In this document: piece by piece, positions 18,769 through 58,700 of the stretch | Layout of the letters: the number at the start of each line of letters is the position of its first letter | Numbering within the stretch: position 1 is the first letter of the stretch | NCBI RefSeq assembly: GCF_021028975.2 | Contig: NC_059425.1 | Location: 51,584,001 to 51,648,000 of the forward strand | Direction of reading: 5' to 3' | DNA length: 64,000 nt | Origin: Sphaerodactylus townsendi | Lineage: Eukaryota | Notes under the pieces: model-generated | The model's input: only the letters and a program-made list of their open reading frames with translations | What the model was told of the DNA's origin: nothing | The model's database searches: none | Position numbers and translations under genes: made by a program

Positions 18769-18967
18769 NNNNNNNNNNNNNNNNNNNNNNNNNNNNNNNN
18801 NNNNNNNNNNNNNNNNNNNNNNNNNNNNNNNNNNNNNNNNNNNNNNNNNNNNNNNNNNNNNNNNNNNNNNNNNNNNNNNNNNNNNNNNNNNNNNNNNNNN
18901 NNNNNNNNNNNNNNNNNNNNNNNNNNNNNNNNNNNNNNNNNNNNNNNNNNNNNNNNNNNNNNNNNNN
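18769..18967. other. Assembly gap; others at 45176-45326 and 56904-57102
   Basis: Runs of N. Confidence 0.99.
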
Positions 18968-26689: not shown

Positions 26690-27895
26690 TGTAAGAGCAT
26701 AAGAAAGAGCCTGCTGGATCAGACCAGAGTCCATCTAGTCCAGCTCACTGCTACTCACAGTGGTCCACCAGATGCCTTTAGGAGCTCACATGCAGGATGT
26801 GAAAGCGATGGCCTTCTGCTGCTGCTGCTCCCGTGTACCTGGTCTGCTAAGGCATTTGCAATCTCGTATCAAGGAAGATCAAGATTGGTAGCCATAGATC
26901 GACTTCTCCTCCATAAATCTGTCCAAGCCCCTTTTAAAGCTATCCAGGTTAGTGGCCATCACCACCTCCTGTGGCAACATATTCCAAACACCAATTACGT
27001 GTTGCGTGAAGAAATGTTTCCTTCCCCCCAGCATTTTCAATGGATGCCCCCTGGTTTTAGTATTGTGAGAGAGAAAAATGTCTCTCTTGTCAACATTTTC
27101 TACCCCATGCATAATTTTATAGACTTCAATCATATCCCCCCTCAGATGTCTCCTCTCCAAACTAAAGAGTCCCAAACGCTGCAGCCTCTCCTCATAAGGA
27201 AGGTGCTCCAGTCCCTCAATCATCCTCGTTGTCCTTCTCTGCACTTTTTCTATCTCTTCGATATCCTTTTTGAGATGTGGCGACCAGAACTGAACACAGT
27301 ACTCCAAGTGCGGTCGCGTCACTGCTTTATATAAGGGCATGACAATCTGTGCAGATTTATTATCAATTCCTTTCCTAATGATCCCCAGCATAGAGTTTGC
27401 CTTTTTCACAGCTGCCATGCATTGAGTTGACATTCCCATGGAACTATCAACTAAGACGCCCAAATCCCTTTCCTGGTCTGTGACTGATAGCACTGACCCC
27501 TGTAGCGTGTATGTGAAGTTTGGATTTTTTGCCCCTATGTGCATCACTTTACATTTTCCTACATTGAACTGCATTTGCCATTTCTTAGCCCACTCACCTA
27601 ATTTATCAAGGTCCACTTGGAGCTCTTCGCAATCCTTTGTGGTTCTCACCACCTTACATAATTTGGTATCATCTGCAAACTTGGCCACCACACTACCCAC
27701 CCCTACTTCCAGGTCATTTATGAATAGGTTAAAGAGCACTGGTCCCAAAACGGATCCTTGGGGGACACCACTCCCTACATCTCTCCATTGTGAGAACTTC
27801 CCATTTACACCCACCTTTCCTTCCTGTTTCTCAACCAGTTTTGAATCCATAGGAGGACTTCCCCTCTTATTCCTTCATTGCTGAGTTTTCTCAAT
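26690..27895 (-). mobile_element. CR1 LINE, 5'-truncated (RT C-terminal half plus 3' UTR)
   Basis: ORF 26879-27850 contains SGVPQGSVLGPVLFNLFINDL, KFADDTKL, W.M.FN..KCKVMH.G, RPHLEYCVQFWSPH and LERRHLRGDMIEVYKI. (TTCTTATG)-type tail near 26690. Confidence 0.95.
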
Positions 27896-41894: not shown

Positions 41895-42087
41895 ATGTAT
41901 TGTCGAGAAGGCTTTCGGCGAGGTTGAACACTTGGGTGCTGTGTGGTTTCGGGCTGTATGGCGTGTTCTGGCAACATTCTCATCAGATCCTCTGAAGATG
42001 CCAGCCACAGATGGTAAGGCTGGCAACGCCACAGGAGAGAATGCTGCTAGAACACGGCCATACAGCCCGGAAACCACACAGCACCCA
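41895..42087 (-). mobile_element. Penelope-like hairpin insertion, same family as 9854-10087, degraded
   Basis: Shares the arms CTGTGTGGTTTCCGGGCTGTATGGC and GCTAGAACACGGCCATACAGCCCGGAAACCACACAG. Near-TSD AATATGGTGACT/AATATAGTGACT. Confidence 0.8.
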
Positions 42088-43569
42088 AATATAGTGACTC
42101 TGGCAAGGGGTCTTCTAAAGCAAATGAGAAGCACAAATGGCTTGCCACTGTCTTCTTCTAAATGCTTTCCTTGCTGATCTCCCATCCAAATACTGGGCCT
42201 GCTTAGCTTCTGAGATCAGCTATACCATCCCTCCTTCCCTAACCCCATGTGGCTCACAAAATAATAAAAACAAAACATTAAAATATATTAATTAAAATCA
42301 AGCATTGAAAACCTAGCCTAACATGAATAAATGTTAAGCATGATGCTTATGGTGCTGTTTGAGGTATGGAGACCTTGCTAAGGTTTCCCCAACTCTTTTC
42401 CAGTCTAGGTTGCACCTAGCCATCCACTCAGCAGTCAAATGTGTTTTGGAGAGGAGACCACAGATGCAAGGAGGAGAAGATGCTGGCCATGATAGTGTTT
42501 GGTGCTTGCTATGTGGCCTCCAGCCAGATCAAGAGCCAAATGGTATCCAGCAGCACATTGTGGCCTTATCAAGAGCAACTGCAATGCATATGGATGAGAT
42601 TTGGAGTACTCACCATGTAGACAGCCTGAGAATACTGAACTCTGCCCTCATGTTGTAATTAGCTTGATAAATTATATAGAATAATTGTTGCTGCCAGCTG
42701 GAGGAGCACAGCTAAAATCTGGCAGAATGTGTGAATTCCATCAATGCTACTTCGGTTTCTTGAATCATGTGCACCAGTAAAATTTGATCCAGAAAATGAA
42801 TTAGAGCACAGTTTCACAGGCATGAATCAATGAACGATAAGGCAGGATTGTTTTCTCTATGGCAAATGCATAGAACAGTTTTTAGAATTGCAGAGTTAGG
42901 AGGAGCAAAACAATGTTGCCCACTACCCCCTGTGATGACACAACTACTCCAAAAGGCTTAACATGATGATTTTTGAATTTCAAGTTTGAAGTGCGCCTTG
43001 AAAAATAAACAAAGCCGGAATATTCCCTGCCTTTCCCACTGTTACCGTTTGTACTTTGGAAACCAGGGTCTGATATAGGAAAAAGCATCTCTGATGTCAT
43101 AGTTGGTATTTTTTCTTCACTGCATATATATTTTGATTAAGTAAATGGTGTCTTGATGGTTACTAGGGTGAGTTTGTTAGAATCTTTGGGGAAATTAGAA
43201 GGAGTAATAGAGAAGGAGAGTATGGAGAAAAGCTGAAATGTAAGCTTCATATGCAAAGGCTGTGTATGTTGGAATGCCACCTGCTTGGGGTTCACAGTGA
43301 GGGCAGCTGCACCCTTTGTGCAATGTTTATTGCTTTCACAAAAACAACTGGATAACCATTGAAGGAAATATAATGCTGAACTAGATCAGTGCCAATGTCA
43401 AAGTTTGCCTAGGCTGCCCAAAAACCTTGAGCCCTCTTTGAATGGTTAGGAACTGAAAAGTTTGGGAACCACTGTTCTAGTCTATACCCACTGAATGGGA
43501 AAGCCCAAATGCAGCAGAAATCAACTTTGTCTCTGTCAGTAAACAGTGATAAAAACCAGATGTAGCCAA

Positions 43570-44900
43570 TCTATATAAATAAAAAGCAAAGTGTCCGTTT
43601 GTTTCTTATCGTTGCTCTCTGAAACTACTGGACAGAATGCTTTGAAATTTTCAGACAATGTAGGACTCACATCCAAGCATGTCTTTAGATGTTCACATAC
43701 CTGAAATTTCACACCTGGCCCAGGTAAAACATCTTTTTTCAAAAACACCAGTGCCACCTGCTGGACTGTGACGCAACGCGCGCTGTGGTTGTTAACGCAG
43801 TGCACACTGCTGATGCTACCGCAATGCGACCCACGCTGTGATGTGTCTTGGACAATTTGTTCTTCGAACACCCACAGATGAAGTTGCCACTTCAAAAATA
43901 ACATTGTCAAAAGAGCTGTATGCTTAAACTAGGGATGGTCCTTTGTTGGGCTGCACACTAGAATTGCCTCCAAGCAGTGCTGTATTAACCTGGTAGCAAC
44001 AGTACCATATGCTACCGGCTGAAGCAATCCAGCCTGCATGTGTCAGTAACCTAGGGAGACAGCAGGAAAGGCCACCTGAGGCCTTCTGAGAGAAAAGGAG
44101 GGAAGGCGGCTGAGAGAGAGAGAGCCCGGCGAGCAGGAGGGATATCTGCAGATGCACCGGGCAGCACCGTGTTGGACCTGCAGAATCCGGATCGGCTCCT
44201 GCGGGTGCTCACCTCCTTCCACGGGGAGGGCCGAGATCCCCATGCACACCAACATCTTGGCCGCCGCCAGCCCCTACATCAGGTGAACCCCCCTTCCCTT
44301 GGCCCAAGGTGGAGTGGGGTAAGGCAAGCCTTAACTCAGCCTTGGGGCCCGCTGCCAGCGGGGAGATCGTCTGCCGAGAATCTTGGCACATTTTGGGAGT
44401 CTGGCTGCCTCCAGGCTGCAACACCATCCGCTCGCAGCGAGGCTTACTCTGGAGTAAGGTAGGGGTATGGTTGACCCGCTGCTGGAGTGCCAACTCCGAA
44501 ACAGAGCTGGGCAGGTAGTTCTAATCTGAGATCTCTGAAGTAACCCAACCAGCGGTACGTGCCTGCTCCGAAGTAACGTTGGGTTTGCCCTGACCATTGA
44601 GGAGTGGTTAGACAACGGCTGCTGCCACCAGGCTCTGTCATTGTGTACTCCAAGGTAAATTAGGTCTGAACTGTCAGTGCCAACCTGTGTTGGATCATCC
44701 CTGAATTCTACTAAACAAACTACAAACCATAATACAACATTGTGAATCCAATCTGCTGTTGAAAAGGGAAAGAGGAGTTCTATTTGACCAGCCCAAAGGG
44801 CTATGCTGGGAATCATTGGACCTGCATGGACATCTGTGTGGGTTGCGGACTGTGATGAGGAGGAAATTTGCCACAGCAACGCGTGGCCGGGTACCACTAG
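43570..44900 (+). mobile_element. Complete non-autonomous Helitron carrying captured host sequence
   Basis: Starts TCTATATAAATAAAAAGC directly after an A (43569). Ends with the GC hairpin GCCAC-A-GC-AAC-GC-GTGGC (44870-44887), then CGGGTACCA-CTAG (CTAG 44897-44900), directly before a T. No TSD and no TIRs. These are the canonical Helitron termini and A|T target. Confidence 0.9.
44142..44282 (+). pseudogene. GAN: Decayed copy of gigaxonin exon 1 (BTB N-terminus) inside the Helitron
   Basis: Translates (I)SADAPGSTVLDLQNPDRLLRVLTSFHGEG, then after a frameshift AEIPMHTNILAAASPYI-R, ending ATC AG|GTGAAC. Recalled GAN N-terminus: MAEGSAVSDPQHAARLLRALSSFREESRFCDAHLVLDGEEIPVQKNILAAASPYIR, with the exon-1 donor at the same point. 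Start codon reads ATA, and the RFCDAHLVLDG segment is deleted. Confidence 0.88.
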
Positions 44901-44993
44901 TGATATAATATATAGGTGCAGACAATCTCAGAAAAATTCTCACCTCTTAGACAGGTCTATATTCTGCCTAAGAGTGGGATACATCAACTAGGC

Positions 44994-45490
44994 CAGGGGT
45001 CGGCAACCTGCAGCTCCAGAGTCTCATGCGGCTCTTTCGTCCTCGTACTGTGGCTCCACAGCAGTGATGCCAATGACAGCAAGTTACACTTGGGACGCGG
45101 CAAGCACGTTTCCTTCCCCACCCCCGCCTCCCTCCCTCCCTCCAGCGTCCCTTCCCCTCCTTCCCTTGTCTGGTGNNNNNNNNNNNNNNNNNNNNNNNNN
45201 NNNNNNNNNNNNNNNNNNNNNNNNNNNNNNNNNNNNNNNNNNNNNNNNNNNNNNNNNNNNNNNNNNNNNNNNNNNNNNNNNNNNNNNNNNNNNNNNNNNN
45301 NNNNNNNNNNNNNNNNNNNNNNNNNNGCGCTCGCCACATCCCAAGTGCAACTTGCCATCGTTGGTATTGCCGCTGCTGTCTATCCCGCCCGCTTGGCTGA
45401 AGACAGGGCTTGGGGAGGCTGGGGGCAGGGGTGGGGCTTGGGGAGGTGGGGCCAAATGGCTGTTTGGGTGCTAAAGGTTGCCGACCCCTG
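44994..45490. mobile_element. hAT MITE spanning an N-gap
   Basis: TIR CAGGGGTCGGCAACC / GGTTGCCGACCCCTG with a perfect TSD AACTAGGC (44986-44993, 45491-45498). Confidence 0.9.
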
Positions 45491-54716: not shown

Positions 54717-55795
54717 AGTATGCTGATGACACCCAGCTTTTGTTCACAATGGAGGGCCACCCGACCTCGGCTCCTGATGCTCTCCAGCATTGTTTAGATG
54801 CTGTGGCTGGTTGGTTGAGTGCGAGTCGGCTGAAGTTGAATCCTACAAAGACGGAGGTCATGTGGCTAGGTCGAGGGGAGTGTCCGGCGGCCTTTAGTCT
54901 GCCTACGCTGCAAGGCGAGGCATTAACATTAGCCTCGTCCGCCAAAAACCTCGGGGTGATACTGGACCCATCACTATCATTGGTTGCCCAGGTCACCCAG
55001 ACGGCTAAGGCAGCATTGTATCATCTGCGGCAGGCTAGACAACTGGCCCCCTATCTCTCCCGATCTGATCTGGCCACAGTGATCCATGCCACGGTCACCT
55101 CTAGGTTAGACTACTGTAACTCGCTCTATGCGGGCTTACCTTTAGCCATGATCCGGAAATTGAAGCTCGTACAAAATGCAGCAGCCAGGTTGCTTGCGGG
55201 AACATCTATTAGGGACCGGATTACTCCGGTCCTGCACAAACTACACTGGCTGCCGATCGAGTACCGGGTCATGTTTAAAGTTTTGGTTTTGACCTTTAAA
55301 GCTATTCATGGCCTTGGACCAGCATATCTACGGGACTGTCTCTCCCTATATCACCCTGCTAGGCCCCTCTGCTCCTCGGAGGCGGACCTTCTGGTGATCC
55401 CTGGCCCCAAAGTGGTCCGGCTGGCCTCCACAAGGGTCAGGGCTTTTACGGCCCTGGCCCTTCCTGGTGGAACAGGCTCCCAGGTGAGATCAGGGCCCTG
55501 TGGGACATACAGAGTTTCCGCAGGGCCTGTAAAACGGACCTGTTCCGCCAGGCATTTGGCCAGCCGGGATAACATCACACCTCTGTGATAAATATCTGGC
55601 CTCTGTGGGTGCAAGAATGGGGCAGGGGAAACAATTTTCATCGCCATCTGATTTTTTTATTTTTATAATTTATATAGGGTTTTAACTAGGATTGTGAAAT
55701 GGATTTTAACTGTTTTATATAATTGATGGACACCACCCTGAGCCCTTTAGGGAAGGGCGGTATAGAAGTTTAATAAAATAAATAAATAAATAAAT
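54717..55795 (+). mobile_element. L2-clade LINE, 5'-truncated at the YADD motif, with (TAAA)n tail
   Basis: YADDTQL...LKLNPTKTEV, SRLDYCNSLYAGLP, LVQNAAARLL, ITPVL.KLHWLP...FKVLVLTFKA.HGLGPAYL. 3' end CACCCTGAGCCC..GGGAAGGGCGGTATAG-(TAAA)n. Confidence 0.92.
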
Positions 55796-58700
55796 ATCTA
55801 TTAGATCACCATTATGTACATGCTTGTTTACTTTCTCAAAAAACTCCAAAAGGTTGGTGATGACTTCTCGTTACAAAAGCCATGCTAATTTCTTCTCAGC
55901 AGCCTTTGTTCCTGTATGTGCCCAATAATTCTATCCTCGATTACAGTTTCTAATAATTTGCCTGGGACAGATGTTGAGCTGACTGGCCTGTAATTTCCTG
56001 GCTCCACTTCCATCTTTTAATTAATAATCTGTGCCACTTGCAGCTTTTTGTGTTCTGTCTTCAGGGCTAGGCCTTCACAACTATGCCATATGGATAAATC
56101 CTTACGTGGATGATCTCAGGAGCTTTGTCTTATCATAAGTACAATAACCTCAAGAAAATACATGGAAATATTTTAACAAGATGGGCTGCTTCACCTAAAA
56201 ATTAGTATCTGGTTATCAAAACAAGGGAAAGGTTTGGAGAGAAGGACCAAACATGATTTATTTTTATTCTCATACTTTCCCCTTTCCAGGATATTTGTTC
56301 CATACAGTTTTCTTTCCTTGGCTTGTATCTAATAAAAAGGGTGGGTAGGAGGTAGATATTTTATTGGAACCACCACCGTTTGTTTCCATAAATGTTTACA
56401 TACAAAAAGCAGGCATTCTGTGGGAGATTTAGACTAGCTAGTAAAACCCTTTTCACCCCCATAAAAACTTTAGATTTGGTCTGAATTTGGCCAAGGTCCC
56501 AGAACTTGTCATAACTTAATTTTATTTTAAAGCTGTAGTTCTGCTAGAGTGCAGCTCACTCCACAACAACCAGCCTTTACCTGTAAATAAAATCATGAGC
56601 ACTTTTTTTTGGTTCATGCTTTGAACATAGTTTGCATTTTGAGAGAATTACTATTAGAAAACAAAATGATTTTGAGGATTTTGAGGATTAGATGACCTCA
56701 AAATGATTTTAAGGATTAGATGACCATCACTGACCACAAGAAAATAAATGGTGTTATATGTAATTTATAAAATGATATATTTGCAATTCAGAAGAGACCA
56801 CAGATGACTAATCATGTAAACAATGAGATTGCTATCCCACAATCATTCTTTGAGTTAATGAGAAAACTCAAGCACATAATGCTAAAGAAGAGGCAGAAGA
56901 TCAANNNNNNNNNNNNNNNNNNNNNNNNNNNNNNNNNNNNNNNNNNNNNNNNNNNNNNNNNNNNNNNNNNNNNNNNNNNNNNNNNNNNNNNNNNNNNNNN
57001 NNNNNNNNNNNNNNNNNNNNNNNNNNNNNNNNNNNNNNNNNNNNNNNNNNNNNNNNNNNNNNNNNNNNNNNNNNNNNNNNNNNNNNNNNNNNNNNNNNNN
57101 NNATTGTAATTTCTGAACTTGAAATAGTATTATACACATTATATAGAAATCCAAAAGGGAGCCCCCTGAGTTTACCACTTTCCTCTGCAATATCTAATTT
57201 AATTTACCCCATATCTTCAACATCATTGTATTGCTTTCTTTTTCATCCTCAACTGGGGCATCCAGTATTACAGAGAGAGACATACATATTATAGTAGTCA
57301 AATACCTCATTTTCTCTCTCCTTAACAGCTTCTCCTTCATCCATCTGAATGGCTGTTGGGGACAAGAGTTGCTATATCAGAATTATTATTTTGTCCATTG
57401 TAGTCTATATTAAATTTTATTATCATTTTATCTATTTAGTTATTTAGATTATTTATTCTTTTCTTATTCCTTTCCATTGATTTTAGTGGGAAATACATTT
57501 GCATCTGTAACTTTCTTGTTTTCCACCCAGAGAGTGGAAATCTTTATATGCAGGTTGAGAAAAGCTATTTCACATTTGGCTATTTCACATTTGGAGCCAA
57601 AATGTGACTGTAATGCTGACAAGGTTCTAGCAGCCTAGTAGTAAGAGAGCCTGCTCTGAAGTTTTGGTGCTAAAGGACCAGATCATACATTAATAAAGAA
57701 TTCTCAGTTCAATCTATTTATCATATGTAGTGTCACTCAGTGTGCGTGAGTATGTGTGTGGCATGGTCATTAAGAGCAGTGAACTATAATCTGGACAACC
57801 ATGTTTGATTTTGCACTCCCTCACATGAAGCCTTCTGGGTGACCTTGGGTTAGTCACAATTCTCTCAGAACTCACTCAACCCCACCTACTTTGCAAGGAG
57901 TCTGTTGTGGGGAGAGAAAAGGGAAATGATTGTAAGCCTTTTTGAGATAGAGAAAAGTAGGATATAAATCCAACTCATAATCTTGTTCTTCTTGAGAGAG
58001 TTTTCATTTCATTATTGTGGAGAGAGGAAGTATTTCGTTTGTGATCCCTGTGAGCCCAGTTACCAGGGAAACCAGCCCTCCGCCTCCCAGGTTCACTGGC
58101 ACTGGATTGGGGGGTAGGGAGGATGGAGTTTGAGGAGGATAGAGATCTCATTGGGGTACAATGCCACAGAGTTCACCCTCCCAAACATCCATTTTCTCCA
58201 GGAGTATTGATCTCTGCCATCTGCAGATGAGCTGTAATTCTGGAGGATATTTAGGTCCAGACGTGGGATCCAGCAGATTCTCACCAGTTCCCGAGAGTGG
58301 GTTACTAATTATTTGTGTATGCCAAGAGAGGGTTACTAATTGGGTCCGCTTTTCCATCTCCACGCCCTTGCCTCCCCAAGAGGCATACTGCCTTTGAACG
58401 TGAAGGTTCCATATAGCAATTGCGACTAATAATGTAACTCCCTGAACTGTGTTAATCCCTTTCAGGTACTGCAATTCATTGATTCTCAGCCTTTCGTACC
58501 TTTTATCTCACCTGTCTCTATCAAAGAACCTGTGTGTTTCACCATTGCTTTGTTCAGATTTGTGAGTTGGGGCATTTTCTATAATGTGATGAAGATTTAG
58601 AAATGACCTGGTGCAAAAAAAATTGTTGGGGTTGTGGTGGGGTGGCTGCCCATGGGGGGGCATCCAACTCAGGTTTTGCCCAGGGCTCAGGTTTGCCTAG

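Follow-up and report, generated by a model that had tools for sequence, protein, structure and literature searches.

Helitrons that carry pieces of host genes are known from several lineages. In maize, host gene fragments lie between Helitron termini and were captured at the DNA level, according to the work cited in PMC2997563 and PMC12001565. HelibatN3 of Myotis lucifugus, as cited in PMC2997563 and PMC4224331 (Pritham and Feschotte 2007), contains NUBPL's promoter, its 5′ UTR, its exon 1 and a portion of its intron 1, and bat Helitrons generally favour the 5′ ends of genes (PMC2997563, PMC4224331). The same tendency is seen for Heli1Xen1 of Xenopus laevis, in which 17 of the 19 captured coding fragments are gene 5′ ends, at copy numbers from a few to 17; this family is also found in the squamate families Lacertidae and Cordylidae (PMC12001565). 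Our literature searches returned no description of a gigaxonin-carrying Helitron or of Helitron gene capture in a gecko or other squamate. This agrees with the preliminary description of the DNA studied here, which took the case to be undescribed in reptiles, though Helitron capture is well known elsewhere.

Here we describe a locus in Sphaerodactylus townsendi, within a stretch of 64,000 nt that was analysed as a whole and is hereafter referred to as the window. We conclude, with a probability of roughly 0.8, that positions 43570-44900 are an old, dead, non-autonomous Helitron copy that carries a 5′ piece of the gigaxonin gene (GAN), captured at the DNA level and amplified.

Element structure and recurrence of its parts

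By sequence inspection, the Helitron is 1,331 bp long (Table 1). Its 5′ end is the TC at 43570-43571, preceded by a host A at 43569, and the start is TA-rich, as has been described for the left ends of canonical Helitrons. The 3′ end is the CTAG at 44897-44900, followed by a host T at 44901. The flanks of the target site (..GTAGCCAA to the left and TGATATAA.. to the right) have no direct repeat in common and thus show no target-site duplication, and no terminal inverted repeats were found in the element. A hairpin at 44870-44887, 13 nt before the 3′ end, consists of a stem of 7 bp, interrupted by one bulge, and a loop of 3 nt. Its folding energy is −5.7 kcal/mol with a z-score of only −0.88, which makes it weak by energy alone; identical hairpin letters are present in the loose-end consensus of other copies (run X5, place 44861). 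An exact scan of metagenome and viral contigs for this conserved hairpin gave 0 matches. No Rep/helicase was detected in the element or the rest of the window, and we therefore describe the element as non-autonomous. Within the window, neither terminus and no other part of the element turned up a second time.

Table 1. Parts of the element and its target site, in window coordinates.
Feature	Position	Strand	Basis
Left target-site flank, ending in A (..GTAGCCAA)	43562-43569	+	Sequence; unique-depth flank contigs
Helitron 5′ terminal module, TC and TATATAAA-type start, very high copy	43570-43801	+	Sequence; contig depth
Interior at low copy, preceding the start codon; putatively GAN upstream region and 5′ UTR	43802-44141	+	Depth; GC
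GAN exon-1-like coding piece	44142-44283	+	Peptide match; ATA start, 35-bp frameshifting deletion at 44232/44233
Intron-1-like sequence beginning with GT donor	44284-44426	+	No gigaxonin similarity after 44283; X7 contig
Second interior module, of other origin than the GAN piece	44427-44755	+	Depth step
3′ terminal module of the Helitron (hairpin 44870-44887, CTAG 44897-44900)	44756-44900	+	Sequence; fold; depth
Right target-site flank, starting with T (TGATATAA..)	44901-44908	+	Left flank not repeated

Nine public sequencing runs contain this region. We used the contigs of four of them, from four organisms (X1, X4, X5 and X7), placed on window positions 42000-45175 at a likeness of at least 85%. 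The depth of unique flank DNA is 62 in X1, 20 in X4, 10 in X5 and 38 in X7. Summed contig depth does not measure true copy number, and the ratios given below are to be read as orders of magnitude only. In X1, summed depth reaches 1.7e5-5e5 over 43590-43801 (with similar ratios in X4 and X7) and 1.1e6 over 44756-44861, compared to 62 for unique DNA; between the terminal modules it is only about 800-1,700. Taking the contigs of the four related organisms together, the 5′ module lies in the order of 3,000-8,000 times and the 3′ module in the order of 18,000 times unique depth. Both ends are present at very high copy and repeat edges coincide with the termini, which makes these the ends of a very abundant family of canonical Helitron form. 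By contig depth in the four runs, thousands of other elements share them. The hallmarks listed in the preliminary description (the A/TC start, the subterminal hairpin, the CTAG/T end and the lack of a target-site duplication) are borne out by these results, both ends being edges of high-copy repeats.

The interior is far less abundant. Over 43802-44437, X1 has 13-28 times the depth of unique DNA, X4 has 12-30 times and X7 has 8-13 times, with a lower value in the thin run X5. In X1 the depth steps up at about 44438, to some 60-135 times unique depth over the second interior module. At single variant places over the exon-1-like interior, 5-20 distinct contigs per run carry another base, and the interior contigs listed diverge by 9-15% from the window. 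We estimate that the GAN-bearing segment is present in about 10-30 diverged copies per genome, in order of magnitude. That the captured segment had spread within the genome was an earlier suggestion, which these 5-20 distinct diverged contigs per run, at about 9-30 times unique depth, uphold.

The diverged contigs tile 43701-43901, 43903-44084, 43970-44275, 44000-44365, 44314-44508 and 44566-44821. Because this tiling is collinear with the window, the joins of 5′ module to GAN piece, of GAN piece to second module and of second module to 3′ module appear to recur in other copies. Two diverged contigs, record 8 of X1 and record 24 of X5, bridge 44426, suggesting that this junction, too, is common to other copies.

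These contigs bear on a different account of the locus, in which the GAN fragment would have been multiplied by segmental duplication or by another transposon and would lie between Helitron pieces only by nesting. In its favour, the interior comprises at least two modules of different depth, another repeat family contains 59 nt of the 5′ module, and no single contig ties the GAN piece to both termini in a further copy. However, the bridging contigs at 43701-43901, 44314-44508 and 44566-44821 indicate that the junctions recur in other copies, the ends are clean and canonical, and we saw no insert flanked by a target-site duplication inside 43570-44900. We consider nesting unlikely and favour capture by the Helitron itself; every GAN-bearing copy presumably has both termini.

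Several further features of the element and its surroundings were recorded. The 59-nt piece, at 43680-43738, occurs in the other repeat family with conserved flanks of that family's own on both sides (consensus agreement 0.8-0.97 in X1, X4 and X7). The second interior module, 44427-44755, contains loosely repeated motifs of about 25 nt (44487-44511 and 44559-44583 are 72% alike). Antisense stop-free stretches run through both element ends, at 44334-44927 (−, 198 codons) and 43539-43928 (−, 130 codons); neither has a Pfam match, and both may be due to chance. A hyper-abundant repeat, probably a SINE, occupies 42000-42105 and 44988-45175 (in X1 its summed depth is 7.75e6, where unique DNA has 62). 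In several runs, joints lead from 42086 straight to 44986-44994, which indicates that the sequence just right of the Helitron continues the same repeat family. No host exon is obvious in the window, most of which consists of transposon debris, including remnants of LINE-type reverse transcriptases at 26882-27874 (−), 54719-55585 (+) and 332-1390 (−) (RVT_1, E 1e-12 and 7e-5; weak zf-RVT). Runs of N are found at 18769-18967 (199 letters), 45176-45326 (151) and 56905-57102 (198), the second of them 275 bp right of the Helitron.

The gigaxonin exon-1-like interior

GC content over 44001-44426 is 58-64%, compared to 44% for the window, with a CpG observed/expected ratio of 0.43. Upstream of the start codon position, at 43802-44141, GC rises to 58-61% with a CpG ratio of 0.36-0.43, and depth in X1 is in the order of 13-20 times unique depth, the same as over the exon. 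We regard the GAN origin of this upstream part as putative.

From 44142, frame 2 translates as ISADAPGSTVLDLQNPDRLLRVLTSFHGEGR, a peptide that includes ..LQNPDRLLRVLTSFHGEG... Frame 3 then reads EIPMHTNILAAASPYIR, with a stop directly after it, within AG/GTGA, where the splice donor GT occupies 44284-44285. We searched the two peptide pieces separately against PDB. The second matched three gigaxonin sequences only, with 15/18 residues identical (E 0.004 among 177,635 PDB sequences). The first, searched alone, gave no significant GAN match in PDB. Its matches there to TAL-effector repeats were rejected as an artefact of summed sub-threshold repeats, no single stretch of which passes.

We compared the arrangement of motifs with that in human gigaxonin. 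In chain 2ppi_A, PQHAARLLR lies at 28-36 (RLLR at 33-36) and EEIPVQ.. begins at 57 (EEIP at 57-60), leaving 20 residues between RLLR and EEIP. A copy in X1 that lacks the deletion of the window copy, read by hand, has RLLR, 20 residues and HEIP, which is the human spacing. The RFCDAH motif restored in it presumably fits human gigaxonin as well. Judged by these comparisons, the match of 44142-44283 to GAN in particular is real, and collinear with the human protein.

An origin from another BTB-Kelch gene, or from a paralogue of GAN, might be considered, as the comparison spans no more than about 50 residues and the first piece by itself lacks significance. We find it very improbable: BTB-Kelch proteins are numerous in PDB, but none besides the three gigaxonin sequences was matched, and the motif spacing and presumably the restored RFCDAH fit gigaxonin.

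No gigaxonin similarity was detected in PDB after 44283, the third frame stopping at once, and 44284-44426 is probably about 140 bp of GAN intron 1. In the literature we found nothing usable on the boundary of GAN exon 1. A scan of all six frames of the window for short gigaxonin motifs, which counts as weak evidence, gave only the exon-1 motif at 44254. Neither such motifs nor PDB matches revealed GAN exon 2 or any later exon in the 64,000-nt window. Since the similarity ends at the donor GT, with no residues of exon 2 after it, the captured piece fits genomic DNA and not cDNA. The preliminary description had held that the GC-rich middle encodes the gigaxonin N-terminus up to AG/GTGA, that it matches GAN, and that it was captured at the DNA level and is not a retrocopy. 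The two-frame translation shows the first statement to be accurate to the base, the second passed the similarity check with the gigaxonin-only PDB match, and the third is supported by the end of similarity at GT and the absence of exon-2 residues.

Other protein searches returned no matches. The three stop-free frames of the element have none in Pfam, which we attribute to the fragments being too short. For the 60-aa and 135-aa stop-free frames no homologous proteins of similar length were found, within a length window that excludes full-length GAN, and a 106-aa query against protein representatives gave 0 matches.

Age of the insertion and decay of the studied copy

Flank contigs of unique depth run into the element for 33-36 nt in X4 and X7 and for 26 nt in X1 and X5, stopping at 43595-43605, the place at which the high-copy repeat must start. 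The X4 and X7 organisms are 0.7% and 2.4% diverged from the window. Because their flank contigs cross the 5′ junction, the insertion is older than the split of those organisms; it is common to related organisms. Among the joints listed, none corresponds to the empty site (43569 joined to 44901), and in each related organism the flank contigs run on into the element.

The parental locus may be represented in X7. A 543-nt contig of unique depth (record 31) is 95% alike over 44216-44426 and no longer resembles the element thereafter. This contig is probably the parental GAN intron, a reading that would place the 3′ capture breakpoint near 44426, with the exact breakpoints on both sides remaining putative.

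In the window copy, the start codon position, 44142-44144, reads ATA. Most other copies have G at 44144 (5, 14, 4 and 9 contigs, run by run), giving ATG. Between window places 44233 and 44232, one contig of X1 contains a further 33 letters. Read by hand in the first piece's frame, they give RFCDAHLVLEGH (R-FCDAHLVLEG-H) and lead straight into EIPMH in one frame. As that contig reads through EIPMH in a single frame, the window copy is, by comparison, a version with a 35-bp frameshifting deletion at 44232/44233, between two GAGGGCC repeats. With an ATA start and a 35-bp frameshift, the studied Helitron copy is dead.

The broken exon here, and the unbroken version elsewhere in the same run, indicate that this is not the real GAN gene. 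In line with this, the question raised earlier of whether the only exon 1 lies here was answered by several exon-1-like contigs in each of the four genomes. That the animal's true GAN exon 1 lies here, flanked by unrelated Helitron fragments by chance, is hardly credible: the GC-rich, CpG-island-like setting with a start codon position and a donor would suit it, but the exon is broken at its start and in its frame with an undeleted version elsewhere in the same run, the segment is multi-copy, and no downstream GAN motif or PDB match was found.

Under the preferred reading of a captured and amplified GAN piece, the Helitron interior would have taken up host GAN DNA, probably part of the upstream region and 5′ UTR, the entire first coding exon, the donor and some 140 bp of intron 1. 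The capture would have been made by this Helitron lineage, through filler-DNA repair or end bypass, two modes that are indistinguishable here. Rolling-circle transposition, with transposase acting in trans, would then have copied the composite to some 10-30 sites prior to the divergence of the related gecko species. The studied copy inserted between A and T and has since lost its ATG (now ATA), 35 bp of its exon by microhomology deletion, and many CpGs.

Significance and comparison with known captures

If this reading is right, Helitron capture of gene 5′ ends, known from maize, bats, insects and Xenopus, extends to the gecko lineage, with a new host and a new gene. The process is a known one, and the view of how Helitrons work is unchanged. 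The locus would add a further example of the bias toward capture of promoters and first exons, and the gecko genome seems rich in Helitrons. The insertion common to related species provides a dated marker, and the small family of GAN-exon copies provides candidates to screen for chimeric transcripts.

NUBPL-bearing bat Helitrons have been shown to act as portable promoters and first exons. The founder of the subfamily may have carried an intact cassette, with CpG-rich upstream sequence, the GAN ATG, a 59-codon exon and the donor. If the founder cassette was intact, some of the 10-30 dwarf-gecko copies might still serve as portable promoters, or as first exons spliced to host genes in their neighbourhood. 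We hold this to be doubtful; if true, it would be the first reptile case of Helitron copies acting in this way.

Among the known systems, Heli1Xen1 shares with the gecko element its layout and a left end of TC followed by a TATATAAA-type start (PMC12001565). The 3′ hairpins differ, however, being CCCGTTA..TAACGGG in Heli1Xen1 (PMC12001565) and GCCAC.GC..GCGTGGC in the gecko element. We rejected membership in Heli1Xen1 on this ground, since a different 3′ hairpin marks another family by the 3′-end rule. Heli1Xen1 is also young, whereas the gecko copies are 9-15% diverged, and the study that describes it reports no capture in reptiles (PMC12001565). Maize elements, in the accounts cited in those sources, often carry pieces of several genes, whereas the gecko element has one recognisable gene piece.

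A close parallel is HelibatN3, as far as the cited accounts describe it. The gecko element differs from it in its host and its gene, in having tens of copies where HelibatN3 has more than 1,000, and in that the copy studied is decayed and known from DNA alone. Like HelibatN3 with NUBPL, it is a non-autonomous element that took, as genomic DNA, the 5′ end of a host gene that is conserved and single-copy, together with the donor and the start of intron 1, and was amplified with it.
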